Source: Selaginella moellendorffii (Eukaryota; Plantae; Lycopodiophyta). Taken from it: a DNA stretch of 64,000 nucleotides. The stretch covers positions 2,281,563 to 2,345,562 of the forward strand of contig NW_003314263.1 in assembly GCF_000143415.4 (NCBI RefSeq). Reading direction: 5' to 3'. Positions within the stretch are counted from its first letter, which is position 1; each line of letters begins with the position of its first letter. Both the position numbers and the translations under genes were made by a program. This document shows positions 13,680-32,338 of the stretch, piece after piece. A model generated the notes under the pieces. It was given only the letters and a program-made list of their open reading frames with translations, ran no database searches and was not told the origin of the DNA.

Positions 13680-14570
13680 CTATACATTTGCTTTGGCTGC
13701 AAACTTTGTCCAGCCAACATGAATCCCTTCGGCCAAAAGTGCCTCCAACTCCACCGGATGCTGCTGCTGCTCGCCTCTGTTTTTGCCTACTTGTTGCATC
13801 ACCTGGAAGCACTTAAGATACATGGCCTTGTCCACAAACTTGGGAGGAGCCCGGGGATTGCAAGCCTCGTCCCCACCCCGGGGCGCATAGAGATTGTTTG
13901 CGCCCCAAGGAACTATGGAGGTAAGCAAGTAGAGCACCAAAAGCCTCCCCACGCGTCCATTCCCATCCCTAAACGGATGAATGCACTCAAACTTGTAAAA
14001 GAAGCTGGCGCCAATGCTCAACAGCTTTGCAACTCTGAGCTTGGGATCTGTCGCAAATGCCTCCTCGAGGGATTTGTTGGTAGCTGACAGGAGCTGCTCC
14101 AAAGCTGCCGGGATCTTCTTGGGATCCATGTAAACATGCTTGCGTCTCTCTGTTGTCAATGTCCACGCCTCACCCCTCCTAAACTCGCCCGCGTCAACCT
14201 CGTCCTTGGTGCTCTCCCCGAGCATCTTGTGGATCCGGAGAATCTTCCCGGAATCTAGGCGTGGAACCTTGTCGGCCTTGGCCTGGGCGTTGACCCAGCA
14301 CAGGCACCTGTACAGGTTGAGCGTTGACACGAGCTTTGGCTTCCTGTCGCCGCCAAAGCCATCGAGCGCAAAAGACTTTGACTGGTTGTACTGGTCAATG
14401 GCATCGCTGACCTCTTCCAGTGTGTCGAGCCCTTCGCCCTCGATGTTTGCCACTTGGAACACGAATTCTTTCACCATTGCTGTGCCCTGCTTGAGCGCGC
14501 CGCTCTTGTTTTTCTCGGGCAGGGATTCGTACCTCGCAACGCACTTCTCGATGCTCTTGATCGTCGCCAT
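13680..14570 (-). CDS. Fic/Fido-domain protein A, copy 1 (296 aa, intronless)
   Basis: Canonical HPFRDGNGRVGR; pre-flap AGEFRRGE; ILRIHKML; N-terminal VANIEG resembling the inhibitory (S/T)xxxE(G/N) helix. Confidence 0.93.
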   Translation of the reverse strand: MATIKSIEKCVARYESLPEKNKSGALKQGTAMVKEFVFQVANIEGEGLDTLEEVSDAIDQYNQSKSFALDGFGGDRKPKLVSTLNLYRCLCWVNAQAKADKVPRLDSGKILRIHKMLGESTKDEVDAGEFRRGEAWTLTTERRKHVYMDPKKIPAALEQLLSATNKSLEEAFATDPKLRVAKLLSIGASFFYKFECIHPFRDGNGRVGRLLVLYLLTSIVPWGANNLYAPRGGDEACNPRAPPKFVDKAMYLKCFQVMQQVGKNRGEQQQHPVELEALLAEGIHVGWTKFAAKANV

Positions 14571-16062
14571 TATACCTGAAACCCTAGGCTCGAACCTTTT
14601 CTATTCATAGGGGAGCCAACGGTGGGGATTCCAGCTTGAAGGGGGGATGGTTGCGATTAGCCAAGCGCTCCAACGGTGGGGATTACATCATCATATCGAC
14701 GGCCAGCGATCAATGCGCGCCAAGTATATATGTTTGGGGAGAAAGTAGGGTTCTTTATCCTCAGGAATGGGAAAGAAGAAATTAGCGCCAACATCGGCAG
14801 ATCCGGCTGTGAAGGAGCTATGCAAGAGATTGCTGAAAGCAAGCAAGAAGAAATTGGCAGCTGCTACAGCGGGCGTGGATATTTCGGCCATGGCAAAGGA
14901 TCCCAGCGATTTCCTCCTGTTCACCCTGGCGGATCGCCGAGGTCTGTGTCCTCGGTGCATTTTGCGAGGAGATTTCCAAGGTTTGGCATCGTCGCTTGCT
15001 TTGCGAGACCTTTCTTTTTCCATCAGCGTGCTTTTCTCTTTCGTCCGGAAGCGACATTCTTTTTGTCAGCAAGGGTTTGCGGGAATTTTTCTTTCCTATG
15101 TGTCGGTTTTCTTGGAAGATCACTTTGCTTTCCCTTGTGTGATTGTGTTCTTCGTTTGTTAGCCGTTTGTAAGCCGCTTTTGACACTTCTTTTCGCCCAG
15201 TTTTGCAAGCTTCACGAGAAGGTGGATTGACGATGGCAGTAGCGCGTCCGCTGTCCTTGTAAGCTCGTCCCGGAAATCTGGAGGCAAATGTAAGTCTCAC
15301 AATCGAGAGTGTTTGGATGGCATGCTATTTCTTTGCTCGGGCATGCTTTAGTATTTGTCCGTGTTTGTGGAAGATCACTGTGCTTTTCGTTGTGTGATTT
15401 TTGTTTTTTGTTTGTGTTCTTGGCTTCGTTTGCTAGTCGTGAGGCTTTTAACACTTCTTTTTGCCATCCTGTCCCAGTTTCTTCAACAACCACAAAGTCC
15501 ACAAGCTTTGCAACCTTGTACAAGTCGGCAGGATCAAACGCACCACCACTGCTACCGACGAGTCTCGCTGTAAGTAGCGCCTGGTAACATTCTTATGCCT
15601 AATGCTTGAAACCAGAAACGAATGGACATCAACTCGGAGACATGTCCAGTGAAGACGAGGATCGTCCCGGACATATGGAGGCGAAGGTATGGTTTCAATC
15701 GAGAGTGTGAGTTGCTTGGGTGGCATGCTAGTTTTGATCGAGAGTGTGAGTGAGCGTCTTCGGTGGCATTCTCGTCGTGCACTTTAGCCCAGCTATATCT
15801 CTTAAACTTGGTCCTGCGAGCCTCTTCTCACTAGTGCTGTTTGTTTGTTTCTCTACAGGTCTGAGAGAACGGGATTCTCTGAGTAAACTGCACCGGTGTT
15901 TTCTACGATATTCATTCAGGTTTTCTTGCTTTTTCTTGCTTTTGTGTTGGAGGAACGACTAAAAACCAGCGTTGAGTTGCTGCAGGGCTAATCAGTTTTG
16001 GACTATCATTCTTACCGGCAGAGGCGGAGCGGGAGCGGGAGCGAGAGAGGCTAGTAGCAGCA

Positions 16063-16563
16063 ATGGATGTCGTTGAGGGATGGGAGGTGGACAAGATCAT
16101 CACCACTGACGACCTCATTGGCGCTACTTTGACTGGTCGAGCGGATGGGCTGCGGCGCAGAGAGGCCAAGACGATGACAACAGGCGGGAGGTGGCATCAC
16201 TACGAGCCTTGGAAGAAGCTGCCTGGAGCGATCGAGCGGTTGCTGCAACAGCTTGGAGAGGCTAGAGAAAGATATCGATGCGATCCCGATCCTCTGGGAG
16301 AAGCAGCCGTGGCTACGTACCTGTGGAGTGTGGCAGAGTTCTTCTTCAAGTTCGAGAAGGTGCACCCATTTTCTGATGGCAACGGGAGGATTGGACGTGT
16401 CCTACTTGCTTGGCTGCTGCGGGATTTCACTGCTGGTAAGCATTTTGTCTTTCGATCGGCGGGAGGTGGTATTCTAACTAGGACTTCATATATAGCTCTG
16501 TTCGAGAGTGATGTAGCCAACAAGATGTTCACGGCTATTGTGAACAGCTTGCTGGTGAGTTAG
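16063..16563 (+). CDS. Fic/Fido-domain protein B, copy 1; probably the last exon of a spliced gene starting at ATG 14767
   Basis: HPFSDGNGRIGR; aligns to FicA (GLRRREAKTMTT vs EFRRGEAWTLTT; FFFKFEKVHPF vs FFYKFECIHPF); frame open upstream to a TGCAG acceptor at ~15985. Confidence 0.85.
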   Translation: MDVVEGWEVDKIITTDDLIGATLTGRADGLRRREAKTMTTGGRWHHYEPWKKLPGAIERLLQQLGEARERYRCDPDPLGEAAVATYLWSVAEFFFKFEKVHPFSDGNGRIGRVLLAWLLRDFTAGKHFVFRSAGGGILTRTSYIALFESDVANKMFTAIVNSLLVS

Positions 16564-30736: not shown

Positions 30737-31447
30737 CCCTGCATTGGATCGATTTAAGCCTTTAATCGATTTAAACTTTGTGGATTGACTGGCTTTCAAC
30801 CTTGCTTTGTTTCAGCCTTCAACTCTGAAGCTCTCTTTATTAAAAACTACATAATAGAATGCTAAACCAAAGATAAATTTATATTTGTCCTTTTTAAAGT
30901 AAAATCTAAAATCACTGGGAATTCTGATTCCATCAACGTCCACACCTGTTCAAGGAATCGTTAGTCCAAAATATTCCAGTCAAGAACACAACACCAAATT
31001 GGAAGATCAGCTGCATTCTTCTAGTTTCATCATTCTTGCCACGCACATATCGTATTCCTGGGAAACCTTGGAATTTCTTCGCAAAGAACAGTGTTGACCT
31101 GGGCAAACAAGAACAAAGTAACGACATGCATTTGGGCAGACAAGAACATAGTAACAACACTTGCAAGAACAAAAACTTCTTCGTCCACCGGAATCCATCA
31201 GGAAGGCTCGCACGGGCGATTTCGCATGCCCCTCGCGTGGCACCTCAATCAGCTGCTGCGATCTACACCATGCGGATAGAACCCCACCCCTTACAATCTT
31301 CGTGCCAAAAGTTTAAATCGATTAAAGGGCATATTCTCGTGGTTATTCTTAACGTAAACAGAGGCATATTCTTTCTTTTAATCGAGGGCTAAGGTTGAAA
31401 GCCAGTTCTATATTCATTAACACATATATACTTTTACTACTTTAACA

Positions 31448-32338
31448 CTATACATTCGCTTTGGCTGCAAACTTTGTCCAGCCAACATGAATCCCTTCGG
31501 CCAAAAGTGCCTCCAACTCCACCGGATGCTGCTGCTGCTCGCCTCTGTTCTTGCCTCCTTGTTGCATCACCTGGAAGCACTTAAGATACATGGCCTTGTC
31601 CACAAACTTGGGAGGAGCCCGGGGATTGCAAGCCTCGTCCCCACCCCGGGGCGCATAGAGATTGTTTGCGCCCCAAGGAACTATGGAGGTAAGCAAGTAG
31701 AGCACCAAAAGCCTCCCCACACGTCCATTCCCATCCCTAAACGGATGAATGCACTCAAACTTATAAAAGAAGCTGGCGCCAATGCTCAACAGCTTTGCAA
31801 CCCTGAGCTTGGGATCTGCTGCAAATGCCTCCTCGAGGGATTTGTTGGTGGCTGACAGGAGCTGCTCCAAAGCCGCCGGGATCTTCTTGGGATCCATGTA
31901 GACATGCTTCCGCCTCTCTGTTGTCAATGTCCACGCCTCGCCCCTCCTAAACTCGCCCGCATCAACCTCGTCCTTGGTGTTCTCTCCGAGCATCTTGTGG
32001 ATCCGGAGAATCTTCCCGGAATCTAGGCGTGGAACCTTGTCGGCCTTGGCCTGGGCGTTGACCCAGCACAGGCACCTGTACAGGTTGAGCGTTGACACGA
32101 GCTTTGGCTTCCTGTCGCCGCCAAAGCCATCGAGCGCAAAAGACTTTGACCGGTTGTACTGGTCAATGGCATCGCTGACCTCTTCCAGTGTGTCGAGCCC
32201 TTCGCCCTCGATGTTTGCCACTTGGAACACGAATTCTTTCACCATTGCTGTGCCCTGCTTGAGCGCGCCGCTCTTCTTTTTGTCGGGCAGGGATTCGTAC
32301 CTTGCAACGCACTTGTCGATGCTCTTGATCGTCGCCAT
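31448..32338 (-). CDS. Fic/Fido-domain protein A, copy 3
   Basis: 296 aa, intact, HPFRDGNGRVGR. Confidence 0.93.
   Translation of the reverse strand: MATIKSIDKCVARYESLPDKKKSGALKQGTAMVKEFVFQVANIEGEGLDTLEEVSDAIDQYNRSKSFALDGFGGDRKPKLVSTLNLYRCLCWVNAQAKADKVPRLDSGKILRIHKMLGENTKDEVDAGEFRRGEAWTLTTERRKHVYMDPKKIPAALEQLLSATNKSLEEAFAADPKLRVAKLLSIGASFFYKFECIHPFRDGNGRVGRLLVLYLLTSIVPWGANNLYAPRGGDEACNPRAPPKFVDKAMYLKCFQVMQQGGKNRGEQQQHPVELEALLAEGIHVGWTKFAAKANV

Follow-up and report, generated by a model that had tools for sequence, protein, structure and literature searches.

Among described Fic proteins, those closest in kind to the genes reported here are the BiP AMPylase/deAMPylase known as FICD (HYPE) in human and FIC-1 in Caenorhabditis elegans, and the bacterial class-II proteins of the BT_2513 (PDB 3cuc) and SoFic types. 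The 2009 Fido paper names metazoa and a handful of fungi as carriers, and a 2015 survey describes multiple Fic transfers into eukaryotes (PMC4454073). A 2025 review (PMC12409994) states that neither plants nor fungi have the FIC domain, in agreement with a preliminary description of the present locus, which held Fic to be uncharacterised in flowering plants. No paper linking Selaginella with the Fic domain was found in our literature search. The locus lies in a 64-kb stretch of Selaginella moellendorffii DNA (the window, meaning the whole stretch that was analysed) and holds three copies of one Fic gene, FicA, and two of a second, FicB, spread over a tandem unit present 2.1 times. Two other ORFs of the window, at 2073-4700 and 42695-44008, have exact entries on a 4,463,058-bp NCBI scaffold, with cluster mates named S. 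moellendorffii. FicA is likely to be a genuine, functional and overlooked nuclear gene, which encodes a soluble, stand-alone class-II Fic enzyme and belongs to an old family of seed-free vascular plants.

Comparison with known Fic systems

Like FICD and FIC-1, FicA possesses the full catalytic motif HPFxDGNGRxxR, and it has a Glu-Gly that aligns with that of their inhibitory helix; a profile alignment with FIC-1 spans the region from the inhibitory helix to the catalytic loop, and the template modelling (TM) scores obtained with Foldseek are 0.65-0.68. Unlike these proteins, which have a transmembrane anchor and tetratricopeptide repeats (TPR), FicA has neither, and identity to them is only 17-20%. 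The inhibitory motif of FICD/FIC-1 starts with Thr (TVAIEGN), whereas that of FicA starts with Val, and the FicA family is multigene and tandemly duplicating, whereas metazoan genomes are described as having one FIC gene each (PMC12409994). Judged by its sequence, FicA is not an FICD orthologue. The best whole-length structural matches were bacterial class-II proteins of the BT_2513/SoFic type (for 3cuc, TMq 0.72 and TMt 0.79, BT_2513 being matched along almost its entire chain; 262-268 residues modelled). Most bacterial class-II relatives add a C-terminal winged-helix domain (MarR/helix-turn-helix in the rows of the ESM Atlas), which FicA lacks, and share 15-18% identity with it; FicA further differs from the BT_2513/SoFic types in its plant genome and plant codon usage.

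Three proteins of Selaginella and the fern Adiantum nelumboides (XP_024542721.1, MCO5567833.1 and MCO5614706.1) share with FicA their clade, full-length homology, the catalytic loop and a C-terminal EGxxVGW. In contrast to them, FicA represents a separate, unannotated lineage with no N-terminal PxWR. XP_024542721 carries Asn at the position of the inhibitory Glu of FicA, and paralogues of the EFJ12819 type have no helix motif. With respect to FicB, the class-I system VbhT/VbhA is the one to be compared, since its toxin, like FicB, is a Fic core without an inhibitory helix of its own. Unlike in that system, no adjacent small ORF with [S/T]xxxE[G/N] was identified here, and FicB shows no detectable constraint and is eukaryotic and spliced; the family profile matched VbhT weakly (E 2e-4).

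Sequence, selection and transcription of FicA

The three FicA open reading frames (ORFs) are the following:

13680-14570, minus strand: FicA copy 1, an intronless 296-aa putative class-II Fic ORF with an inhibitory-helix-like V40-A-N-I-E44-G45 and catalytic H198-PFRDGNGRVGR209
22512-23402, minus strand: FicA copy 2, 296 aa, 11 nt from copy 1 (7 synonymous, 4 non-synonymous)
31448-32338, minus strand: FicA copy 3, 296 aa, 22 and 15 nt from copies 1 and 2, in a truncated third unit

It had been suggested that the locus contains five Fic ORFs (three FicA and two FicB) with the full HPFxDGNGRxxR motif, that all three FicA ORFs are intact at 296 aa, and that about 7 synonymous and 4 non-synonymous changes separate copies 1 and 2. 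ORF analysis and matches to PF02661 bore out the first two statements, and the count proved exact. FicA matches PF02661 with an E value of 1.4e-17 (64.8 bits against a Pfam cut-off of 24), and its Fic core is complete, with catalytic His198 and the GNGRxxR anion hole. The catalytic motif, HPF(R/S)DGNGR(V/I)GR, is complete in all five ORFs, reading HPFRDGNGRVGR in 3/3 FicA copies and HPFSDGNGRIGR in 2/2 FicB copies, and its His and Gly-Asn-Gly-Arg are invariant throughout the family alignment.

Ratios of non-synonymous to synonymous substitution rates (dN/dS) for the three pairs of FicA copies were 0.159, 0.127 and 0.139. The copies differ by 24 distinct events, 8 non-synonymous and 16 synonymous, where 78% would be expected to be non-synonymous (binomial P = 3.8e-6). 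No indel or stop was found in 3 x 891 nt of FicA, whereas flanking DNA of similar divergence carries indels. FicA is thus under purifying selection, as previously proposed, and this selection is still acting after the duplication. Its G+C content at third codon positions (GC3), 0.69-0.70, lies within the range of the neighbouring plant genes (0.66-0.73).

Expression, for which the preliminary description had called, was examined in assembled contigs. Contigs of three runs from three studies sit on 13633-14502 and not on the flanks, while the DNA run X8 covers everything. One RNA-type contig, of run X1, equals FicA copy 1 at 13633-14502 (870 nt, 0 differences), and other RNA-type contigs carry copy-2/3 variants. 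Since the putative RNA contigs cover FicA and not its flanks, whereas the DNA run covers both, transcription of FicA, without splicing and from more than one copy, is very probable. None of the three FicA copies or the two FicB ORFs had an exact entry in a collection of 15 billion proteins; because, in addition, no representative exceeded 40% identity in an exhaustive search (see below), we regard FicA as unannotated.

Predicted structure and class of FicA

The AlphaFold2 (AF2) model of FicA had a mean predicted local distance difference test score (pLDDT) of 85 and a predicted TM score (pTM) of 0.87. In this model a helix at residues 30-44 ends in V40-A-N-I-E44-G45, and a beta-hairpin flap (strands 136-138 and 144-146) precedes the core helices. 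Foldseek returned a probability of 1.0 for more than 40 Fic structures, among them BT_2513, human FICD, C. elegans FIC-1 and SoFic (TM 0.6-0.72), and structural neighbours in the ESM Atlas reached a TM of 0.76 over residues 1-296. When the family profile was compared with the PDB, the best matches were FIC-1 and FICD (E ~3e-17), and in the FIC-1 alignment the inhibitory-helix segment of the family coincides with the inhibitory-helix motif of FIC-1. Glu44-Gly45 of FicA would therefore be the counterpart of the Glu-Gly of FIC-1.

The preliminary description had stated that these Fic genes lack the architecture of FICD, which combines a transmembrane segment with TPR, and Pfam indeed identified only the Fic domain in the 296-aa FicA, with no transmembrane segment and no TPR. 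The frame upstream of FicA is closed a few codons ahead of the ATG. By analogy with FICD and other class-II Fic proteins, FicA would probably use a nucleotide as donor and attach its AMP, or a related group, to Ser/Thr/Tyr of target proteins. Glu44 would keep the enzyme auto-inhibited and, as Glu234 does in FICD, could permit the reverse, de-AMPylating reaction. With no signal peptide, transmembrane segment or TPR, the protein would work in the cytosol or nucleus.

Relatives of FicA

Relatives were taken at E <= 1e-10 from an exhaustive search of 1.84 billion protein representatives. Word-indexed protein searches yielded chiefly generic prokaryotic Fic proteins and overlooked most of the family; the plant relatives surfaced only in the exhaustive search. 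The nearest relatives matched residues 29-294 with E values of 1.5e-35 to 1e-23 and identities of 35-40%, none exceeding 40%. The relatives comprise only Selaginella proteins, two proteins of the fern A. nelumboides and unlabelled Logan contigs. No seed plant or model bryophyte was found among them, Selaginella and Adiantum being the only plant names. The named Selaginella relatives include XP_024542721.1, annotated as "adenosine monophosphate-protein transferase fic-1", and UniProt "Fido domain-containing" entries; related Fic proteins of Selaginella are therefore already public under Fic/Fido names, and FicA itself is an unannotated member.

In a quick maximum-likelihood (ML) tree the sequences of Selaginella and Adiantum, FicA and the very long-branched FicB among them, all fell into one clade with a Shimodaira-Hasegawa-like approximate likelihood ratio test (SH-aLRT) value of 94. 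Within it, lycophyte and fern lineages are interleaved, with no resolved order. Introns are present in the Selaginella paralogues P0224, P0075 and P0227. No TPR was found in ten long relatives tested, and the tree was hence built without an FICD sequence. FicA belongs to a multigene Fic family that is old in seed-free vascular plants, with at least 5-6 lineages in Selaginella and at least 2 in Adiantum. The term "lineage-restricted", applied to these genes earlier, holds only loosely, in that the closest kin are S. moellendorffii paralogues and the two Adiantum proteins, all in one clade.

The adjoining clade (SH-aLRT 96) consists of unlabelled sequences, some of which lie on megabase-sized, eukaryote-like metagenome contigs of 34-36% GC with ZBED1- and Gpi16-type neighbours. 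On three metagenome contigs (L001, L002 and L003; 36% GC, ZBED1-type neighbour) two full-length Fic genes stand head to head, separated by 322 bp (in L001, 4734-5678 on the minus and 6001-6894 on the plus strand), and one partner of this pair has HPFGNGNGR and no inhibitory-helix motif. Three Selaginella models, P0079, P0080 and P0103 (EFJ09681, EFJ17632 and a model on GL377605.1; L010 4001-5026), are without the catalytic loop or without any Pfam Fic hit, although the rest of each aligns. These models are probably wrong and conceal additional Fic genes.

FicB and the divergent gene pair

The elements on the plus strand next to FicA are the following:

16063-16563, plus strand: FicB copy 1 Fic ORF, with PF02661 and the HPFSDGNGRIGR motif
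24932-25438, plus strand: FicB copy 2 Fic exon ORF, 168 aa unspliced, with PF02661; upstream exons with the same stops as copy 1
15478-16664, plus strand: FicB copy 1 transcript, exons 15478-15569, 15616-15684, 15857-15916, 15983-16554 and 16632-16664+
14767-15162, plus strand: 14767-type ORF, 131 aa, with neither a family match nor cover by RNA contigs, and not linked in frame to the Fic exon

The two FicB ORFs match PF02661 with E values of 3e-11 and 2e-12 (44.3 and 48.0 bits; cut-off 24). Contigs of run X6 show the GT..AG joints of FicB, which are absent from the DNA run X8; the introns of copy 1 are 46, 172, 66 and 77 nt long, the last one near the 3' end. The sole Fic ORF of this transcript runs from the ATG at 16063 to the stop at 16662-16664 (174 aa). 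Upstream of it, once the exons are joined at the observed splice sites, in-frame stops close the Fic-exon frame in both units. The ORF corresponds to FicA residues ~100-233 (37% identity) plus a tail, the N-terminal ~100 residues including the inhibitory helix being missing; the family profile matches it at positions 125-268 only, and the family hidden Markov model (HMM) detected no trace of the missing N-terminus upstream.

The two FicB copies differ by 10 non-synonymous and 4 synonymous changes, giving a dN/dS of 0.79 (P = 0.45 against neutrality, a weak test with only 14 changes). The GC3 of FicB, 0.57, is below that of FicA and the neighbouring genes, its stem branch in the ML tree has a length of 3.0, and the family-invariant His114 is replaced. 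One FicB contig (depth 5.7) has a 23-nt deletion relative to both copies and may be a broken allele. FicB would thus be a strongly diverged paralogue of much greater age, of which a 174-aa Fic core is left, preceded by a long leader with several introns. Although transcribed, it shows no detectable constraint between copies, and is either decaying or a non-canonical short form; probably it is a truncated partner in decay.

It was previously suggested that each FicA stands head to head with a putative first exon of FicB, with ATGs at 14570 and 14767. The two ORF starts are indeed 196 bp apart, but the 14767-type ORF has no Fic similarity, RNA cover or in-frame join to the Fic exon, so that this first exon is unsupported and the supposed pair is an intact gene beside an N-terminally truncated, fast-evolving partner. 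Nor was a class-I antitoxin gene found: there is no family-profile match between FicA and FicB, and the 14767-type ORF has no domain hit. In unit 2 this ORF is lengthened by an in-frame 27-nt GC-rich microsatellite expansion (at 14784 in unit 1 coordinates; 23616-23642), which adds 9 residues, a Pro-Ala-rich run. The FicB deletion of unit 3 has its breakpoint at this spot as well.

The tandem array

Self-comparison revealed a unit of 8.8-8.9 kb with 93.6-98.4% identity between copies. The units and the further features within and behind them are the following:

13623-22454, 8832 bp: tandem unit 1, with FicA, FicB, a Fic relic, a tRNA-Lys 3' half, U1 snRNA, a P450 pseudogene, a RING-H2 ORF and alpha/beta-hydrolase exons
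22455-31390, 8936 bp: tandem unit 2, content as in unit 1
31391 to ~32539, 1.15 kb: partial tandem unit 3, with FicA3 and the spacer to the equivalent of 14783; FicB deleted
18384-18544, plus strand (second copy 27376-27536, plus strand): full-length U1 snRNA gene, scoring 139 and 134 bits with Rfam RF00003 (gathering score 69.5)
20088-20450 and 29024-29386, plus strand: intact RING-H2 ORF, 120 aa, with 2 amino-acid differences between units
18020-18075, plus strand: inverted FicA-derived relic, 56 nt, 86% identical to 13898-13953, abutting the tRNA-Lys(CTT)-like 3' half
33201-33371, plus strand: longer inverted FicA-like relic behind FicA3, matching the stretch just past the catalytic motif

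Both unit junctions are identical in sequence, and the array contains no N gaps. Units 1 and 2 differ by 0.7-2.8%, with small indels. The letters specific to the unit-3 junction (joint 14783>16983; 32530-32540) recur in contigs of the independent DNA run X8.

According to the preliminary description, the FicA ORFs had stayed intact while the P450, tRNA-Lys and gene fragments of the same unit decayed. This holds for the P450 pseudogene, which is barely recognisable in each full unit (E 0.02-0.07), and for the tRNA-Lys(CTT)-like element, of which only the 3' half is present (~18078-18124) and for which neither ARAGORN nor Rfam made a call. It does not hold for the RING-H2 ORF, the adjoining alpha/beta-hydrolase exons, whose frame is open in both units, or the U1 snRNA, all of which are sound in both units, so that a contrast of intact Fic genes with a decayed remainder is overstated. 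The U1 spliceosomal snRNA genes have been copied together with the Fic genes.

Since five other features, including the U1 snRNA, RING, hydrolase and P450 pseudogene, were copied alongside, the amplification is an ordinary young segmental duplication of 8.9 kb and not Fic-specific. The same co-copying means that no dosage selection on Fic is demonstrated, and the dosage amplification proposed earlier is not supported. The three FicA copies would be the outcome of a very recent segmental tandem duplication of this kind (1-2.5% divergence). A tblastn and profile scan of the window identified no intact Fic gene beyond the five, but two short inverted FicA relics, which indicate that Fic genes were repeatedly duplicated locally in inverted orientation and then decayed. 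The divergent layout of FicA and FicB is best read as a product of such local inverted duplication, which was also the source of the two relics, and not as a two-gene system. When the Fic pair was considered as transposon cargo, a search for terminal inverted repeats turned up nothing beyond the inverted FicA relic and a single weak pair of 22 nt, and this candidate was rejected.

The whole Fic array is bracketed by an inverted duplicate of 1.4 kb (7458-8849 and 33803-35184, 90.7% identity), each arm of which holds an ORF (336 or 346 aa) that matches nothing in Pfam. A cluster of tRNA genes lies shortly before the array, on its upstream side (2016-2089, 7125-7209, 9580-9663 and 12568-12652), one for tRNA-Ala(TGC) and three for tRNA-Ser(GCT).

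Alternative explanations

Fic genes are overwhelmingly bacterial and FicA is intronless, as would be expected if the locus were bacterial contamination or a very recent transfer. This is extremely unlikely, as FicA lies on a 4.46-Mb scaffold among plant genes (in the window around the array, a G-lectin receptor kinase, SET-TPR, sugar transporter, NPF and gypsy element, as well as the U1 snRNA), its GC3 equals that of its neighbours, FicB is spliced, and the closest relatives of FicA are plant genes. Because these nearest kin are other Selaginella Fic genes and two Adiantum genes, FicA is not a recent transfer; the host-like GC3 and the introns in paralogues also argue against a recent date for the horizontal acquisition suggested earlier. 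An ancient acquisition, in which the lycophyte/fern family came from a bacterial class-II Fic gene via an early vascular plant or an earlier eukaryote and then expanded, is compatible with FicA being an old plant gene, and we consider it somewhat less likely than not. It is favoured by the patchy spread of the family, with only Selaginella and Adiantum among the plant-named matches at E <= 1e-10, by a Fic/Doc phylogeny riddled with transfer into at least 4 separate eukaryotic groups (PMC4454073), and by the bacterial Fic proteins that are the closest structural neighbours of FicA in the Atlas. On the other hand, the nearest sequence clade of the plant Fic proteins (SH-aLRT 96) holds eukaryote-like metagenome contigs, the language-model neighbours belong to eukaryotic clusters, most often of Mollusca and Ascomycota, and no identified bacterial sister group was found among relatives most of which carry no taxon label. 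The introns and host-like GC3 of the family show only that any transfer was old.

The number of copies could also be inflated by the assembly, if units 1 and 2 were two haplotypes set in tandem and the true haploid content were two FicA and one FicB. The v1.0 Selaginella assembly is reported to derive from a heterozygous plant and to contain both haplotypes; units 1 and 2 diverge by only 0.7-2.8%, with small indels, and other genes on the scaffold also have near-identical duplicates there. Such an artefact is nevertheless unlikely, as the array is gap-free, the three FicA sequences are distinct, and the unit-3 junction was seen in an independent DNA run; moreover, the junction from unit end to FicA is present twice, each time with its own substitutions, and there must therefore be at least two FicA genes per haplotype. 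Neither of the paralogous ORF437 loci, looked up to locate the window on its scaffold and to detect a second haplotype, had an entry. Very unlikely, in our judgement, is a functional two-gene module of FicA and FicB with a shared bidirectional promoter, in one version toxin/antidote-like or selfish, with the inhibitor-less FicB core controlled by FicA. The divergent orientation is preserved in both full units, FicB lacks the inhibitory helix that comes in trans in class-I Fic systems, and an unrelated eukaryote-like contig carries head-to-head full-length Fic genes 322 bp apart. Yet unit 3 is without FicB and its FicA is equally constrained, there is no constraint between the FicB copies, the start codons of FicA and FicB are 1.5 kb apart, not 196 bp, under the RNA-supported model, and other Selaginella Fic neighbours are arranged in tandem, not divergently. 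The defensive or selfish role suggested earlier is likewise not supported.

Several points weigh against our own reading, that FicA is a functional class-II Fic gene, present in three copies, beside a decaying partner. i) The inhibitory motif of FicA is VxxxEG, with Val at the first position, where the canonical form is [S/T]xxxE[G/N], and FicA has no N-terminal PxWR segment, which is common to most relatives. ii) The catalytic competence of FicA is a prediction from sequence and fold. iii) The three expression runs, available in contig form, were only guessed to be RNA, and contigs do not give transcript ends, strand or level. iv) FicA copies 1 and 2 differ about as much as the haplotypes of the assembly are said to do, and one of the three might therefore be an allele set in tandem. 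v) Despite its very long branch, FicB retains a perfect catalytic motif and a 174-aa frame without stops, which argues for a function that lasted until recently or persists today.

Implications

The Selaginella loci, FicA among them, indicate that the statement of Fic absence from plants is wrong for seed-free vascular plants. FicA combines a complete catalytic motif, putative transcripts, selective constraint, a candidate FICD-like regulatory glutamate and multiple copies, and was overlooked by annotation. Rather speculatively, and with little likelihood attached to it, lycophytes and ferns might keep an expanded cytosolic system of FICD-like AMPylation/de-AMPylation that was lost in seed plants, in which the Glu-bearing members would be regulated and the Glu-less ones (FicB and the XP_024542721 and EFJ12819 types) constitutively active, and in which rapid local duplication, inversion and decay would reflect an arms race in immunity or conflict. 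FicA offers a tractable entry to two questions, namely what the targets of a soluble FICD-like enzyme with no endoplasmic reticulum anchor are, and why seed plants lost the family.

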